Source: Chlorokybus atmophyticus (lineage: Eukaryota > Plantae > Mesostigma and Chlorokybus algae). From it: a DNA stretch of 64,000 nt. Below, piece after piece: positions 9,500 to 16,805 of the stretch. Every line of letters begins with the position of its first letter. The first letter of the stretch is position 1. A program made the translations under genes and the position numbers. Location of the stretch: NCBI GenBank assembly GCA_009103225.1, contig RHPI01000260.1, positions 258,203 to 322,202 of the forward strand, in the 5' to 3' direction. The notes beneath the pieces were generated by a model. That model saw only the letters and a program-made list of their open reading frames with translations. It searched no databases and was not told the origin of the DNA.

Positions 9500-11570
9500 C
9501 TTGCCTTTCGCTCTTCATACTGCGCTCTCCCTCTGCCATAACAACGTTTTCAGCATTCATGCATATGTTAAATCGAGAGCAGCTGAAACAATGAGCGTCC
9601 ATCTCTGCAAATGCAACAATTATGTCACTGTGTGAACATAGTTGAGCATCAGATCTAACATCCGTATAAGAAACTGGCCTGATACCTGATAGGTAGACTG
9701 CAGGGGACTTGGCACGCAGTGCCGACGACACAATGGGCGATCTCGCTGTTGGGACGCGCATTTGTATGTGAGCGCTTGCTGGCCTTCGGTGGTTGGCTGC
9801 AGCATAAAAGACAGGTCATTGCACCGTTGACCACAGACAGACGCTCTAGGCAATGGTGCGCACCATCGAGTTGGGTGACCCGAGCGGTGAGGTCCTCAAA
9901 GCAGTCTTGGAAGATGTCCATGGGCTTCCTCTGCAGCTTCACCTCGCTCTGCACACCATCAATATCTCTGCGAAGCCTGCACAGTGCTTCAGTGTTAGGT
10001 TTCACAAGCGTCAACATTTCTACAATGGTGGGATCAATAACTCAGCTCCATCAACACTACAAGCTACCGTTAGCGGAAGCAAGTTACCTCTGCTCCAGCC
10101 CAGCAAGTGCGTCGCGGGACGAGACGAGTGCCAATGCCATCCGCACCATCTTTCCTTGAGTTTCAAACGACTTGACTCGACTCGAAAACTGCCACAGCAC
10201 CACACGTTACATAGATGCTCAGCCAGCAGGTGAGAGCGAATCCATACGACATAAGCATGTAACTGTGATGGCTAGGCGCACTGATGCATTCAGCAAGCCA
10301 GCAACGAGCAACCTTGCTGAAGCCGTTCGCTATCTGCTGGACCGCAGCTGCTTGTGAGCAGGATGTGTCCACATTAGACAAGAGCAAAGTAAGAAATTGG
10401 CTGGCAGTTACAGTCTATACGCGCCTGACTGACCAGCTGATTCTGCACGCGCTCCAACAGTCATGTTACAAGACGGTCTAGCTGCAATGATGGTGAGGCT
10501 TCTTGGCCCCTGCAGTTGCCACGCAGGTACTTAAGTAGACATATTATGTTGTGCAACCAAGGGTACTTGGCCAGTGTGAACAGGCTGCTTCAAAGTGTCC
10601 TATGTTGAGGGAGCGAGTCTGTTTTTGCTGCGCTGTCATTATCACCTCGCTCGGCCCTCTGGTATGCACACGCAGCTTGTCAGTTCACAGACAAGCGTCG
10701 CTGCCTGTCGTTGCAAGCGTGCGTTTGGTGCTACAAACATGGCTATGTGCATAAACGTACGTCATGCGAAGCGCTGCGCCTCTGTGCTCCATCCTGTTGG
10801 AACCTGCAGCGGTTGCACGTGAGGTGAGACATGCACGGACTCCTTGGATCACCTGTCTGCAACAACTACCATTGCCTTTGACTGTGCCTAGAAAGTGTGG
10901 TTGAAGCCTTCCTGCTTGTCACGCTGGTGGTGGTGATCTTTGCTGCTGTCAGTCACCCTTGCACGCAGCTCGCTTTGCTCCTTCAGGCACGATTGAGTTG
11001 AGCGTTGATGGCATTCCCGATGCTGTCTGGATTTCATACACGTGTACCTCTACAAGAGTCTGCAGCTATTGGACGGTCTACTCTTGCATCTGCTCAAGGA
11101 TGTGCAGGCACTCCACGCTGCGCTGCATCTGCTCGACAGCCCTTGCATCAACAAACCACCAACAAATCACTCGCAACCACAGCTCTAAACACACTTCCGC
11201 ACTGTGCCGCCGGACACTCTCAAGCGCCTCGTCCATCTGCTCCACACGCTCCTGAACGCCACACCCAGTATGCTTCAACAATTAGCAAACAGCGCATTCA
11301 CAAGACTCGACATTGCGGTTGTGTTGGGTCAAGCAGCCAGTGCATGAGTCCATGCAGGACCTACTACTCTGCTGCTGTTGGACGGCCTGGACGTGTTGTG
11401 GCAGCGAGTTACGAATGGCGTGCTCCACGAGAGCATGCAAAGGCCGCGACTGACTCGCCTTCTCGCCCTCCCTCGCGCTCGTCTCATCAGGCGTCCAATC
11501 CAAAGTTGCCGTCAGCGCGTCCTCCACGCGATGGTCGAACTCGTTCAGCTGCGCCGCGTCCAACTACACG
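9500..11570 (-). pseudogene. Degenerate multi-exon coiled-coil protein gene
   Basis: E/Q/L-rich helical segments (LDAAQLNEFDHRVEDAL; VQERVEQMDEALESVRR; LCRLRRDIDGVQSEVKLQ) are interrupted by in-frame TAGs at 11080-11078, 11068-11066 and 10890-10888. Boundaries are approximate. Confidence 0.5.
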
Positions 11571-12641
11571 AGCAAACCTGTGGGAATAGACATGGGTGAA
11601 GTGTCATGTTACATTATGTGTAATCTCATTACTGGATGATGATGCTTGGCAGGCTTGAAAGAGTTCACGCATGTGCACCTGGGAGATTGACTTGTTCTCA
11701 AGGTGTTTGATGCGTCGGAGTATGGATGCAAAGGCCTTGGATGCCTGCGGAGCCTGCGCTCAATGTTGTGTTGGCACTTGTGCTGACACCAGTTTCATTG
11801 AGTCTTAAGGATTGCTTGGCGCATGCATCGGAGTTGGTTGTGAGGTGAAGCTGGGTCAACACTCAGGATAGAGAGAGAGATGCATTGTCAAGCTGAACAT
11901 GTTGCGATGTGGAGCGAGAATCGTTGCACCTCGTTACAAACGCGTGTCATGTCTGTGCTCGTTCGGGTTCACGACTGTTGATCACGTGACAGGTATCATT
12001 AGTCACTTGTAGCACTGCCTAGTATAGTCATGACGCATGCAGCTAGCCATGTGCGTTTTGCTGCAAGTGACCACCATCAGAGATCTTCGTCCTTCCAGTT
12101 TACGCACAATGACAGCCACTACTAGCACAAAGTTGGGGACCAGACCACTCAAAGGACGTATCAGTACATGCTGTGTACGGCAAGCAACAGACTTTGGGTT
12201 GTGGAAAGTGGCGTGAGTACATGACTCAATGGTGTATGCTGCGTTGAGTGACATTGGTTACCTTGGTTTTCTTGCGTGTGTGCTCGAGAGTGTAAGAGTC
12301 CAGGTACGCCCCATGCAGCAACCCGTTCGTCATTCGCCTTGTAGCTCACTCAATTGCCCCAACTGCCGCTGACGCTCATTGCGGCACACATCACATGGGA
12401 GCGCAGTCCATTACCAGCAACGAAGTCATTACAAGTCTAGTCGTAAAGACTACTGGGATTCCGTTTTGTAGGCAGCAACAAGTTGACTTGACACGAGCAG
12501 GCTCTCCTTCACACCTATCCGCCGCCGCCGCCGCCGCTTGCTGGCGAGCTGAAACAAACACGTGCAGTGGGAAGTGCAACATAGCAGCGAAGCAGCAGTT
12601 TGCTCTGCAGCGCAGTCCAGGCGGCGGCGACGGCGACGGCG

Positions 12642-14171
12642 ATGGCCATGGCAAAGGTGTCGCCAATTGGGGCAGCTGTTTATTCCGTTGGGGTGAAACG
12701 CATGGGCACTTCAAGGCGTGGCTTTTGCAGCAGCGAAGTGGTTCTCAGTGCCTGTTGCAGCCTGCGGCTCCGCCAGGGTAGGTAGGTGAGGACTGCGCAA
12801 ACCTCCGCAGCAGTTGCTGGCGACTGACTGTGTTGAGTTTTCGTTGGTCCCATGTTTCCCACAACGTTGGGCGTTCAACCATCCATCCAACACTGCAGTG
12901 CACACTAGCGCCTGCATATGCTCGCTGGGTCGTTCACATCGCATTTTCTCAGCAGGCAATGCAATTCCTATGCTGTTGTTTCATCTACACCGCACTAGAC
13001 TCTCAGCCAGAAGCCGCTTGCCAAAAGGAAAGCATGGTCCTGCCCACAGCGTACGCGCCACTGCATGCGATCAGAATGAAAGCAATGTACCTGTACCTGC
13101 TGCGCACAGCAGTGGTGACGACTTGGTGGTGAGAAGTTGCATTTGGGTGCTCTTTGTACTGCAAAATCAGTTGGAAACCATAGTAATGTCAGGGTCACAT
13201 AATAGCTTTAGCTCTACTTGTGTTTTCGTGCTGTTGGTGGCTCACAATGCCCTGCTTGTTGGGAAGGTCGAGACGTTGACTATGCTTGAGACCAACCTGG
13301 ACGACTCGACGCCCCAGTGCATTGCGTATGTCTTAGAGCGTGCCTTGACACTGGGTGCCCTCGACGCGTGGAGCAGCCCGGTGAGTCGGAAAGTGCTCTC
13401 AGACCAAGCTGGTTGTAACTTGATCATGCTCGTGTTGATTGTCAATGCATGCTGTTTGCCATGTGTCGATGATTAGGGGTCCGTTGGCATCAGCATAACT
13501 CCACTGCCGCGCTGCCCTGCCGGACATGCCAACACACTAGTTGCTGACCGCAAGAAGAGTTACTGAAAGTGGTGCATTCTCAGATCACAATGAAAAAGGG
13601 GCGACCTGGGCTGACCCTGAGCGTGCTCTGCCGCCCTGAGAATGTATTGAGTTTGCAAACGCTGCTGTTCAAGGTGGGCTTTATGTTACTCGTCTGGGTG
13701 ACAGGTGCACAAGCATGCGCTGATGCACTCATATGCGCAGGAAACTACAACACTAGGTGTGCGGTGCACAGTTTGTGAGCGCGTGAGCTTGCCTCGCAAG
13801 TTCGTGACAGTTGTGACAAAGTGGGGGAGTATACCGGTCAAGGTGGCAACCCTGCATGGTGTGATTGTAAGCAAAGCTTTTACAGTTAGCACAGGCATCT
13901 ACCATTGATTGCACTGGCTAGTCTCAAATGCAATAAACTTGGCAGGTCAACGCGCATCCTGAGTATGAAGATTGCGCCAGAGTTGCCAGAGAGTGCAATG
14001 TTCCTCTTAAGGTGAGTCTGTCATGGTGGTTAGCGTTGCTCTGGTTTGTCAAAAGCCATTTGCCATGTCATTTCAATGCTAATGTTGCTGGTGCAGGCCG
14101 TCTTTGACGAGGCTAAACAGGCCTTTGCAGAACAAATTGCATCAACTATCAGTTATAATGCTAGCTGCTGA
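12642..14171 (+). CDS. larC: LarC C-terminal-domain (LarC2-like, NPN nickel-insertase family) protein with a predicted plastid transit peptide
   Basis: Spliced product: MAMAKVSPIG...SVRATACD (transit-peptide-like), then MLETNLDDSTPQ, GALDAW, ITMKKGRPG, LFKETTTLGVR, VNAHPEYEDCARVARECNVPLK. These are hallmark LarC C-terminal motifs. Confidence 0.88.
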
Positions 14172-14243
14172 ACTACAATGAGGCATCAGACCAGGACTAT
14201 TTCTTGCATGCATGCATATGCCCAGTCTCTTCACCATCGCTGC

Positions 14244-14652
14244 AAGTGGGGAATTATACCGGTCAAGGTGGCAACCCTACATGGTGTGATTGTAAGCAAA
14301 GCTTTTGCAATCAGCATTTGCTAAGATGCATAGACATCTGCAATGGACTGCACTCGCGATTCTCACATGCGCCAAGTTTGGCAGGTTGGGATGCGCATTG
14401 ATCAATGCGCATCTGGAGTATGAAGACCGTACGATAGTTGCCAGAGACTGTAATGTGCCTCACAAGGTGAGTCTGTCATGGTGGTCAGCATCAATTAAAC
14501 TGGCTTGTCAAGGGCCATTTTCTTGCCTGTTAATGCCAATGCTGCTGCTGGCCATGTCTGAGGCTGAGCAGTCCTTTGCAGAACATAACGCATGAACCAC
14601 CGGGTTGTAATGCTAGCTGCACAACTACGATGAGGCAGCAGCCCAGGACTTG
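14244..14652 (+). pseudogene. Degenerate tandem copy of the last larC exons, introns and 3'UTR (copy of about 13819-14200)
   Basis: Near-identical ataccggtcaaggtggcaaccct and gagtatgaaga...gttgccagaga...aaggtgagtctgtcatggtgg, with substitutions (HPEYEDC becomes HLEYEDR). Confidence 0.9.
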
Positions 14653-16805
14653 TTACTGCATCCGCGGGCCCGCCACCTTCTTTCATGGGGTCACACAAAT
14701 CACACGTCTTGTTTAGGCGTTGCCACCACTTTGTTTGATAGCTTACCAATATCGCTGTAGAGGTTGATAGCACTTGCATGCGTCTTGACAGCTTGTGTTA
14801 CACTTATTGCCATTCATGCAAGATGTCCATCATATTGGAATGAAGCTAACTTGAAGTATTATGGCGCCATGCGACTTCTTTTTGCCGTTGACATAAGCAC
14901 TTAACTGTTATCTTCAACCATCCATTGTGTCAGTTGTATTCACTGCAATTGTCGGTTACCAATTACGAGTTTGCTAGCCAGCAATCGCGCCAATCAACCA
15001 ATGGCAATGGATGCAAACATTCGGACCCGAACCTCACGCATCCACTCATGTTGTTTGCTGTATGGATAAGCTCTCCTTTCATTTATCTTCTCTCCGCTTC
15101 TACGATTGCGCAAATGGGCATCCACTACCATATGCATTGCACCTAGCGGGCCTTAATTGTATACTTGTATACACTTTACATGCTAAAGTTTGTTTCATTT
15201 ATTGCTACCCGCCGCTAGCTTGTGTGATTCAAATTATAAGATTGAGATAAGAACTGCAATCGATTCTCATGAAGATTATATATCATAGATTACTTTATAC
15301 TCTATTATACAATCATTCAATATTATTCAACCGATCGGCAACTTCCGTTGCAAATAACAATCTACAGTGTATTCTTATTCAAAGATTGCGCGACATCAGT
15401 GTATCATCGATTGCAAACAGCGAACTTTATTGCAATATTTCAAGTGACCAACTACACTTAGAACTGATTTAAATCAGATAGAGATGCAAAAAGTGTCTAG
15501 GGGTTGGATTGCACAAGTGATCTACCAAACTACCTTTTGGAACGATGGGCTCTTGCATACCTTATGCAACACATTACAACTGCACAAAGCAAAGACGAAT
15601 ATATATAAAACAAACCACGGTTGGAAACTATTAGCAACATCGCGGTTCAAAAACTAGCAGCATTGATGAGTTCTGTGTACAAAGATGCGAAAGGCAATGT
15701 GTGCTGCTGCCGTGTACAAATTTATCCCAAATCGTGACATTAAAGATCTCACTCATGGTAGCGTCTTTCGCTACCATAGCCTAGTGGTCGGAGCCCACTT
15801 GTTACATGCCCTATGCACAGTGCCGCTCGAATGACAGGGGTGTGCTTTTCACTACATACAATGTATGCTGTAATTTGCCACTTTATAAAGGGAGAGATTA
15901 AAGTTTCACACAATTGCAAGGTTATCAACTGCCAAATCCTGCAATGTCTAAAATGACGATGTCTATGGCGCTATGGCTTACACACTTGGAGGCGCGTACA
16001 TCATAACACACATACATATGGAGATATTTTTGGATGTGCGAATGGTACTTCATGATGATGATGTGATTGAGGTTGTGTGTGAACACTTGGTATGCACATA
16101 CTGCGCGCATGCTTTCGTTCCATGCACATAGATTGCTGTACCCACTATGCACATGGGTGCTTGCAGCGCGTTATGCTGCTCCTCCTCGCAATGCTCGTGT
16201 TTGCTAGCAAGAGACCAGGGTACAATACATTGGCAAAGAAGTGGCGAATGCGTCAGGACATCTTACCATGATGCATGAGATAGTCATGAGGTCCCAAGCA
16301 ACTTGATGGTCTGGAGACAGATCATGGACATGCACATATTTGCTTGCATGCGCGCTATGAATGTTGCATCATTTGAGTACAGTAGTGGTTTCTCTGTAAG
16401 AACTCTCAGCATCCAAACTACTCCCTGCCTGAATGTATGTTATCACAAGGGAAGCAGGCTCCAGCAGTACGACAATGCTGCTGGCGCTGGAGAGTACACC
16501 AACGCAGCGGCATTGCTCTCAATCTCCCTATCCTACATTCTATCATACTCATGCACTGATGGTCGAGGGGCTTGCCCAGCATACCTCACGAAAATTACTC
16601 GACAAGCCCAAACCTATGTATCTACTACTACCTTACAATCGCAGTGGCCGTTTCATTTCTTTCGTTGAACAGGTTATGGCCACATTCATTTCTTTTGTTG
16701 AACAGATTATGGCCACATTCGACTGAGCATGTGCCTAGGCACAAGTACACCCAGCGAGTATACACAGCAACCAACCATTGCCGCAGCAGTTGTTTGGCAG
16801 GCAAG

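Follow-up and report, generated by a model that had tools for sequence, protein, structure and literature searches.

A nuclear gene of Chlorokybus that encodes the LarC2 domain alone lies on the plus strand of the 64,000-nt stretch of DNA analyzed here (the window), at 12953–14171 with the end of its 5′ exon at 12781. The gene is spliced and expressed, and its product consists of LarC2 preceded by a short leader that lacks structure. The nickel-pincer nucleotide (NPN) is a rare organometallic cofactor on which nearly all work has been done in bacteria, and Chlorokybus is among the earliest-branching streptophyte algae; an expressed, intron-bearing LarC2-only gene suggests NPN chemistry in the algal relatives of the plant lineage. 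In the literature, we found neither lar genes of green or streptophyte algae nor a free-standing LarC2 described, and to that extent the novelty for green algae claimed in an earlier, sequence-only reading of this DNA stands. The gene model itself is already in JGI/EukProt, and lar genes, widespread in bacteria and archaea, are known to be present in some unicellular eukaryotes, with one oomycete LarA homologue characterized (PMC11770544). The gluconate 2-epimerase LarAH15 of Phytophthora nicotianae demonstrates that some unicellular eukaryotes use NPN chemistry (PMC11770544); it is a user enzyme of an oomycete, whereas the gene described here encodes a biosynthetic half-enzyme of a streptophyte alga.

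The identity of the domain is supported by profiles, structure, and conserved residues alike. A word-index search returned a near-identical protein, the 209-aa JGI/EukProt model Chlat1/1425 from Chlorokybus (P0001 below), whose sequence is the translation of the window exons from ATG 12970 to the previously proposed stop codon, now confirmed as TGA 14169–14171. Against NCBIfam NF052512 (“nickel pincer cofactor biosynthesis protein LarC2”), an equivalog-domain model for NPN biosynthesis with a cut-off of 50 bits, P0001 scored 151.9 bits over model positions 2–118 of 118. Against PF01969 (Ni_insertion; cut-off 22.1 bits), the score was 164.9 bits, and the match covered only positions 239–374 of 375; the earlier claim of a LarC2-only protein is thus supported. 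Translated exon by exon, exons 3–6 correspond to PF01969 positions 243–279, 280–309, 310–346, and 351–372, respectively, the profile being continuous across every border of these four LarC2 exons, and the NCBIfam label for the same four exons is LarC2.

P0001 matched the LarC2 sequence of Lactiplantibacillus plantarum (6BWO) with an E value of 5.7e-29 (39% identity over 144 aligned columns), and its residues 55–193 aligned with residues 264–406 of the full-length LarC of Moorella thermoacetica (12BI). In an AlphaFold model built on 30 sequences, residues 53–208 had pLDDT values of 94–98, and the closest PDB structures to the model were 6BWO and 6BWQ (Foldseek, target TM 0.88–0.90, rmsd 1.8–2.1 Å). 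The predicted structure thus has the LarC2 fold, which is marked by a ferredoxin-like N-terminal part and a protruding C-terminal part and is that of the L. plantarum protein. In a 30-sequence LarC2 alignment, P0001 keeps all of the 16 invariant and all of the 16 near-invariant columns, and the conserved LarC2 motifs NLDD, MKKGRPG, ETTTLGVR, and PEYEDC are all present.

We resolved the exon structure with transcript contigs mapped onto 5,001 nt of the window (Table 1). The contigs of one transcriptome run (X1) are identical to the window and thus come from the same organism, and those of two others (X2 and X4) are 90–95% alike and come from related species. The X1 contig confirmed the introns at 13129–13266, 13381–13583, 13674–13740, 13867–13945, and 14012–14096, and the splice joints are common to X1 and X2, one of them being found also in X4. 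At the 5′ end, the X1 contig runs through 12261–12779 and continues at 12951, which is equivalent to the joint 12781|12953. The depth of the LarC2 contig, which is only a rough guide, equals that of the neighboring gene. Transcription of the LarC2 gene starts to the left of 12642, within 12262–12641; the start is placed only to this interval because the contig also carries exons of an overlapping minus-strand neighbor.

Table 1. Positions of the LarC2 gene, its surroundings, and the bacterial loci with LarC2 next to larE and larB (window coordinates except in the last row)
Feature	Position	Strand	Basis and remarks
Exon 1, 3′ part	12642–12781	+	X1 contig piece 12261–12779, 0 differences; ORF reconstruction
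Intron 1 as observed	12782–12952	+	GT..AG, 171 nt; X1 contig
Exon 2	12953–13128	+	Start ATG 12970; codes for the 53–54-residue non-LarC leader
Exon 3	13267–13380	+	LarC2 start, ETNLDD motif; joint 13128|13267 in X1, X2
Exon 4	13584–13673	+	MKKGRPG motif; joint 13380|13584 in X1, X2, X4
Exon 5	13741–13866	+	ETTTLGVR motif; joint 13673|13741 in X1, X2
Exon 6	13946–14011	+	PEYEDCAR motif; joint 13866|13946 in X1, X2
Exon 7	14097–14291	+	Last 24 codons, TGA, start of 3′ UTR; joint 14011|14097 in X1, X2
Divergent neighbor gene	10875–12640	−	CT..AC introns 10981–11047, 11252–11364, 11578–11678, 11754–12261
Decayed tandem copy of 13819–14209	14244–14661	+	75–92% identical; about 420–455 bp
larE–larB–larC2 loci	L085:3415–5477; L086/L087/L089; L088		Metagenome and MAG contigs

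The transcripts change the reading of the 5′ end. An exon beginning at ATG 12642 had been proposed to be spliced directly onto the LarC2 frame, with an intron ending at 13006; that intron end is not seen in the transcript contigs, and the observed intron 1 does not support the splice. The alternative join 12777|13007 is likewise ruled out by the intron of the transcript contig. Of the earlier proposal, the added N-terminal leader holds, and its MAMAKVS... sequence falls out of frame in the single transcript form observed. The ATGs at 12642, 12648, and 12702 share one frame in exon 1, and with the observed splice, ATG 12642 opens a 61-codon upstream ORF that ends at TAG 12996–12998 in exon 2. 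ATG 12970 is then the start codon of the LarC2 frame, exactly as in the JGI model. It stands in a weak context, C occupying both −3 and +4, and is preceded by four ATGs (12642, 12648, 12702, and 12959), one of which opens the overlapping upstream ORF. The weak start context, the overlapping upstream ORF, and two introns in the 3′ UTR, described below, together suggest low or regulated translation.

A different 5′ end could nevertheless be the productive one. Tandem GT donors lie 4 nt apart at 12778, 12782, and 12786, of which only 12782 is seen in the contigs. According to the ORF reconstruction, joining donor 12778 to the observed acceptor places ATG 12642 in frame and yields a 260-aa protein with the MAMAKVS... 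start. If this were the true protein, the 5′ end would be mis-modeled and the 209-aa model with its upstream ORF would represent a nonproductive splice variant. Several details are in keeping with the longer form: the context of ATG 12642 is good (G at −3 and +4), its N-terminal peptide is rich in Ala, Ser, and Arg with the first acidic residue at position 32, and donor 12778 (AGG|GTAGGT) equals the observed donor in quality and restores the frame exactly. Transcript contigs drop rare variants, and a minor form using donor 12778 is compatible with them. However, the sole assembled transcript of the same organism uses donor 12782, the first piece of a related species' contig also ends at 12781, and the upstream frame is not conserved in that species, as read from a 30-letter loose end at 12730. 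We therefore consider the 260-aa form a possible though unlikely main product. The question of the start codon is separate from that of function: the longer form would change the leader, and the LarC2-only nature of the protein is unaffected.

The supported leader has 54 residues, including 7 Arg or Lys and 5 His, with a net charge of +3 and the first acidic residue at position 34; that of the alternative form with donor 12778 would have 104–105 residues and a net charge of +9. Residues 1–52 were modeled at a pLDDT of about 45–58 and lack predicted secondary structure. We found no comparable leader in the alignment with bacterial LarC and LarC2-only proteins. In one related species, the transcript contigs do not align cleanly onto the window in the leader region, and this poor fit indicates that the leader evolves faster than the LarC2 exons. 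Its composition and predicted disorder would fit an organellar presequence without naming the compartment, and targeting to an organelle is plausible.

The LarC1 part of the protein is missing from the whole locus. A full-length LarC carries, in the same polypeptide or locus, an N-terminal LarC1 with a GxSGDM motif, a His cluster, and an acidic pocket, and none of this accompanies the algal LarC2. Tblastn searches with seven bacterial LarC proteins, N-terminal domain included, found no LarC1-like segment in the 64-kb window; every match fell either in the LarC2 exons or in a decayed copy downstream of them, and a LarC1 hidden within the window is thereby ruled out. The space upstream of exon 1 is occupied by a divergent gene on the minus strand, so there is no room for upstream LarC1 exons, in agreement with what the sequence-only reading had maintained. 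The same reading had named transcripts with upstream exons encoding LarC1 as what would overturn it, and the contigs contain none: their upstream exons belong to the minus-strand gene. This neighbor has a 508-nt intron (11754–12261) in its 5′ part, and the beginning of the LarC2 transcript overlaps with its 5′ exon. A 1714-nt contig with introns of both senses indicates that the two overlapping head-to-head transcripts were assembled as one. Read off this contig, the intron borders of the neighbor gave no clean ORF. A profile search with 19 bacterial LarC1 segments gave 7921 matches; the best 120 were bacterial in appearance, with no eukaryote label and no sequence of the alga among them.

GCC/GGC and GGCGAC triplet repeats lie at 12515–12641, immediately ahead of ATG 12642. 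At these repeats, unrelated contigs from every run attach, which accounts for loose ends at positions 12621 and 12652 as well as for a spike of depth in the bin 12604–12770.

Judged by its sequence, the gene is of bacterial type. In a word search covering proteins of 115–366 aa, the closest non-self matches were 52–54% identical, and P0001 was the only match with a eukaryote label. A search of prokaryotes, with one genome per species, gave among its best 80 loci mostly Acidobacteriota (50–58% identity), with some Myxococcota, Chloroflexota, Collinsella, and two cyanobacteria. Nearly all of these 80 loci encode fused LarC proteins of 390–560 aa. In a maximum-likelihood tree of 78 rows and 159 columns, the branch of the alga is long and does not fall within the Acidobacteriota clades; the best tree places it as sister to the two cyanobacteria sampled with weak support (76/50), a grouping that joins long branches, and the bacterial LarC2-only proteins share this weakly supported group. 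An Acidobacteriota donor, suggested by the top identity values, is not supported by the tree, and a tree that constrains the alga to the Acidobacteriaceae clade survives the AU test (P = 0.245). The phylogeny called for in the earlier reading to distinguish cyanobacterial ancestry from horizontal transfer thus upheld the bacterial type and did not separate a cyanobacterial from another bacterial origin; with this sample, endosymbiotic and later transfer appear indistinguishable.

The LarC2-only layout of the alga is unusual and not unique, as bacteria carry LarC2 alone too. Three short relatives (P0005, P0015, and P0021) are located in larE–larB–larC2 operons, in which the neighboring genes scored 294–304 bits as LarE (TIGR00268) and 246–248 bits as LarB (NF033503). 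Around these operons, the nearest 5 kb hold no LarC1-like sequence and the nearest 10 kb no further PF01969 gene, and we found no description in the literature of this arrangement with LarC2 alone. Two further settings lie outside lar clusters. In Collinsella (L050, L053, and L071), LarC2-only ORFs adjoin PHP, metallophosphoesterase, and MazG genes, and in one lineage recovered from two independent samples (L002 and L003), LarC2 is flanked by thiL, which it overlaps by 4 nt, and by uvrC. The bacterial proteins (L085–L089, Collinsella L050, and L002/L003) resemble the algal one in length (158–210 aa), in their scores on NF052512 (131–169 bits), and in having no LarC1 within 2.5–10 kb; they differ in being prokaryotic, without introns, and without a basic leader. 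We found no characterized member in the literature. The algal gene is thus a eukaryotic member of a LarC2-only architecture that also exists in bacteria. Two other loci, L001 and L004, were rejected as stand-alone LarC2, since LarC1 is encoded immediately upstream of it in a different frame, the arrangement also seen in L. plantarum.

Comparison with the known systems shows where the algal gene departs from them. In L. plantarum, LarC2 is also a separate reading frame, and the adjacent larC1 and larC2 frames are fused into one protein by programmed frameshifting (PMC13510736). The algal gene, in contrast, is nuclear, has six coding introns and an added N-terminal leader, and is accompanied by no LarC1 in 64 kb. 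The fused LarC proteins, among which those of Acidobacteriota have the highest identity to P0001, contain LarC1, a His-rich region, and a tethering linker needed for activity (PMC13510736), and the algal protein is without all three. The archaeal protein MK0293 of Methanopyrus kandleri (3C19), the third-best structural match of the P0001 model, is 177 aa long, stands alone, and folds like LarC2 (Foldseek E value 5e-11, TM 0.55–0.63), but its identity is only 24% and it is a structural-genomics entry with no assigned function.

In the current model, the hexameric core of LarC2 binds CTP at the subunit interfaces and CMPylates the dithiocarboxylated pyridinium mononucleotide, and the intermediate then goes to LarC1, the site of nickel insertion (PMC13510736). 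According to the cryo-EM model of 2026, the CMPylated intermediate moves from LarC2 to LarC1 along a flexible tether needed for activity, and deleting, shortening, or stiffening the LarC1–LarC2 linker of the M. thermoacetica LarC brought activity below 10% (PMC13510736). All defining features of LarC2 are retained in the algal gene, and none of LarC1. On the simplest interpretation, the gene provides the CTP-dependent half of a split, two-polypeptide LarC, a reading that we regard as evenly poised between right and wrong. A gene of bacterial ancestry, now intron-bearing, would encode a functional LarC2 behind the 54-residue leader (about 105 residues with donor 12778). Its product would perform the CTP-dependent activation step and would partner a separately encoded LarC1 in trans, probably in an organelle and together with LarB and a LarA-like user enzyme. 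By analogy, the bacterial larE–larB–larC2 operons without LarC1 nearby may be taken as a precedent for such a two-polypeptide enzyme. Given the drop in activity caused by linker changes in M. thermoacetica, an untethered pair of LarC1 and LarC2 might work poorly. If the pair is naturally untethered, it would show whether the tether is dispensable, and the same applies to the bacterial lar operons with LarC2 alone.

LarC2 could also have a job of its own that does not involve LarC1: it might bind CTP or transfer CMP as an enzyme, or sense nucleotides as a hexamer. The substrate would be the NPN precursor or another compound, and the bacterial LarC2-only proteins encoded outside lar clusters may work likewise. 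The recurrence of LarC2-only genes in bacteria without LarC1 nearby, in Collinsella and in the thiL–LarC2–uvrC lineage, is consistent with such a role, as are the high structural rank of the stand-alone archaeal MK0293 and the weak structural matches of the P0001 model to PII-like nucleotide-binding trimers. LarC2 alone, moreover, forms a hexamer (PMC13510736). Against this, the algal protein scores three times the cut-off of an equivalog-domain model specific to NPN biosynthesis, its nearest short relatives are found in larE–larB–larC2 operons, which points to NPN chemistry, and we found no report of LarC2 activity independent of LarC1. On balance, we think an independent role rather unlikely. 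More broadly, and with less than even confidence, we suggest either that NPN is synthesized in an organelle with LarC1 and LarC2 as unlinked nuclear genes that cooperate without a linker or that the alga, the larE–larB–larC2 operons, and Collinsella represent free-standing CTP-dependent activating enzymes that have gone unrecognized.

The 3′ end of the gene bears on whether a useful protein is made at all. A stretch running from the 3′ portion of exon 5 to exon 7 with its stop codon, introns 5 and 6 included, has been duplicated in tandem, and the decayed copy sits in the 3′ UTR (Table 1). Its inherited splice sites are used, producing introns at 14292–14384 and about 14467–14581, as seen from the joint 14291|14385 in X1 and X3 and from contig pieces 14385–14464 and 14580–14748. 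Spliced introns downstream of a stop codon typically trigger mRNA decay. One could thus regard the gene as a partial duplicate or leftover of a full-length larC that is still spliced and transcribed and yields little or no useful protein, a reading to which the decayed copy of exons 5–7 and the two spliced introns after the stop lend some weight, as do the weak main ATG and its position behind the overlapping 61-codon upstream ORF and other upstream ATGs. The coding part, however, argues against this. Its frame is uninterrupted, no invariant LarC2 residue has been lost, and the structure model is very confident; two related species share the coding exons, at 90–95% identity, and the splice joints, and 6 of the 10 substitutions listed in exons 3–6 are synonymous, the list being incomplete and not equivalent to a dN/dS test. 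The contig depth, as a rough guide, is that of the neighboring gene. A transcribed remnant is accordingly quite improbable, the least probable of the readings considered.

In the contig of a related species, the sequence jumps from 14142 to 14605, as if only a single copy were present. Directly downstream of the gene, at 14900–16000, the GC content is about 0.43 compared with 0.53 overall, and the window contains 317 N in total.
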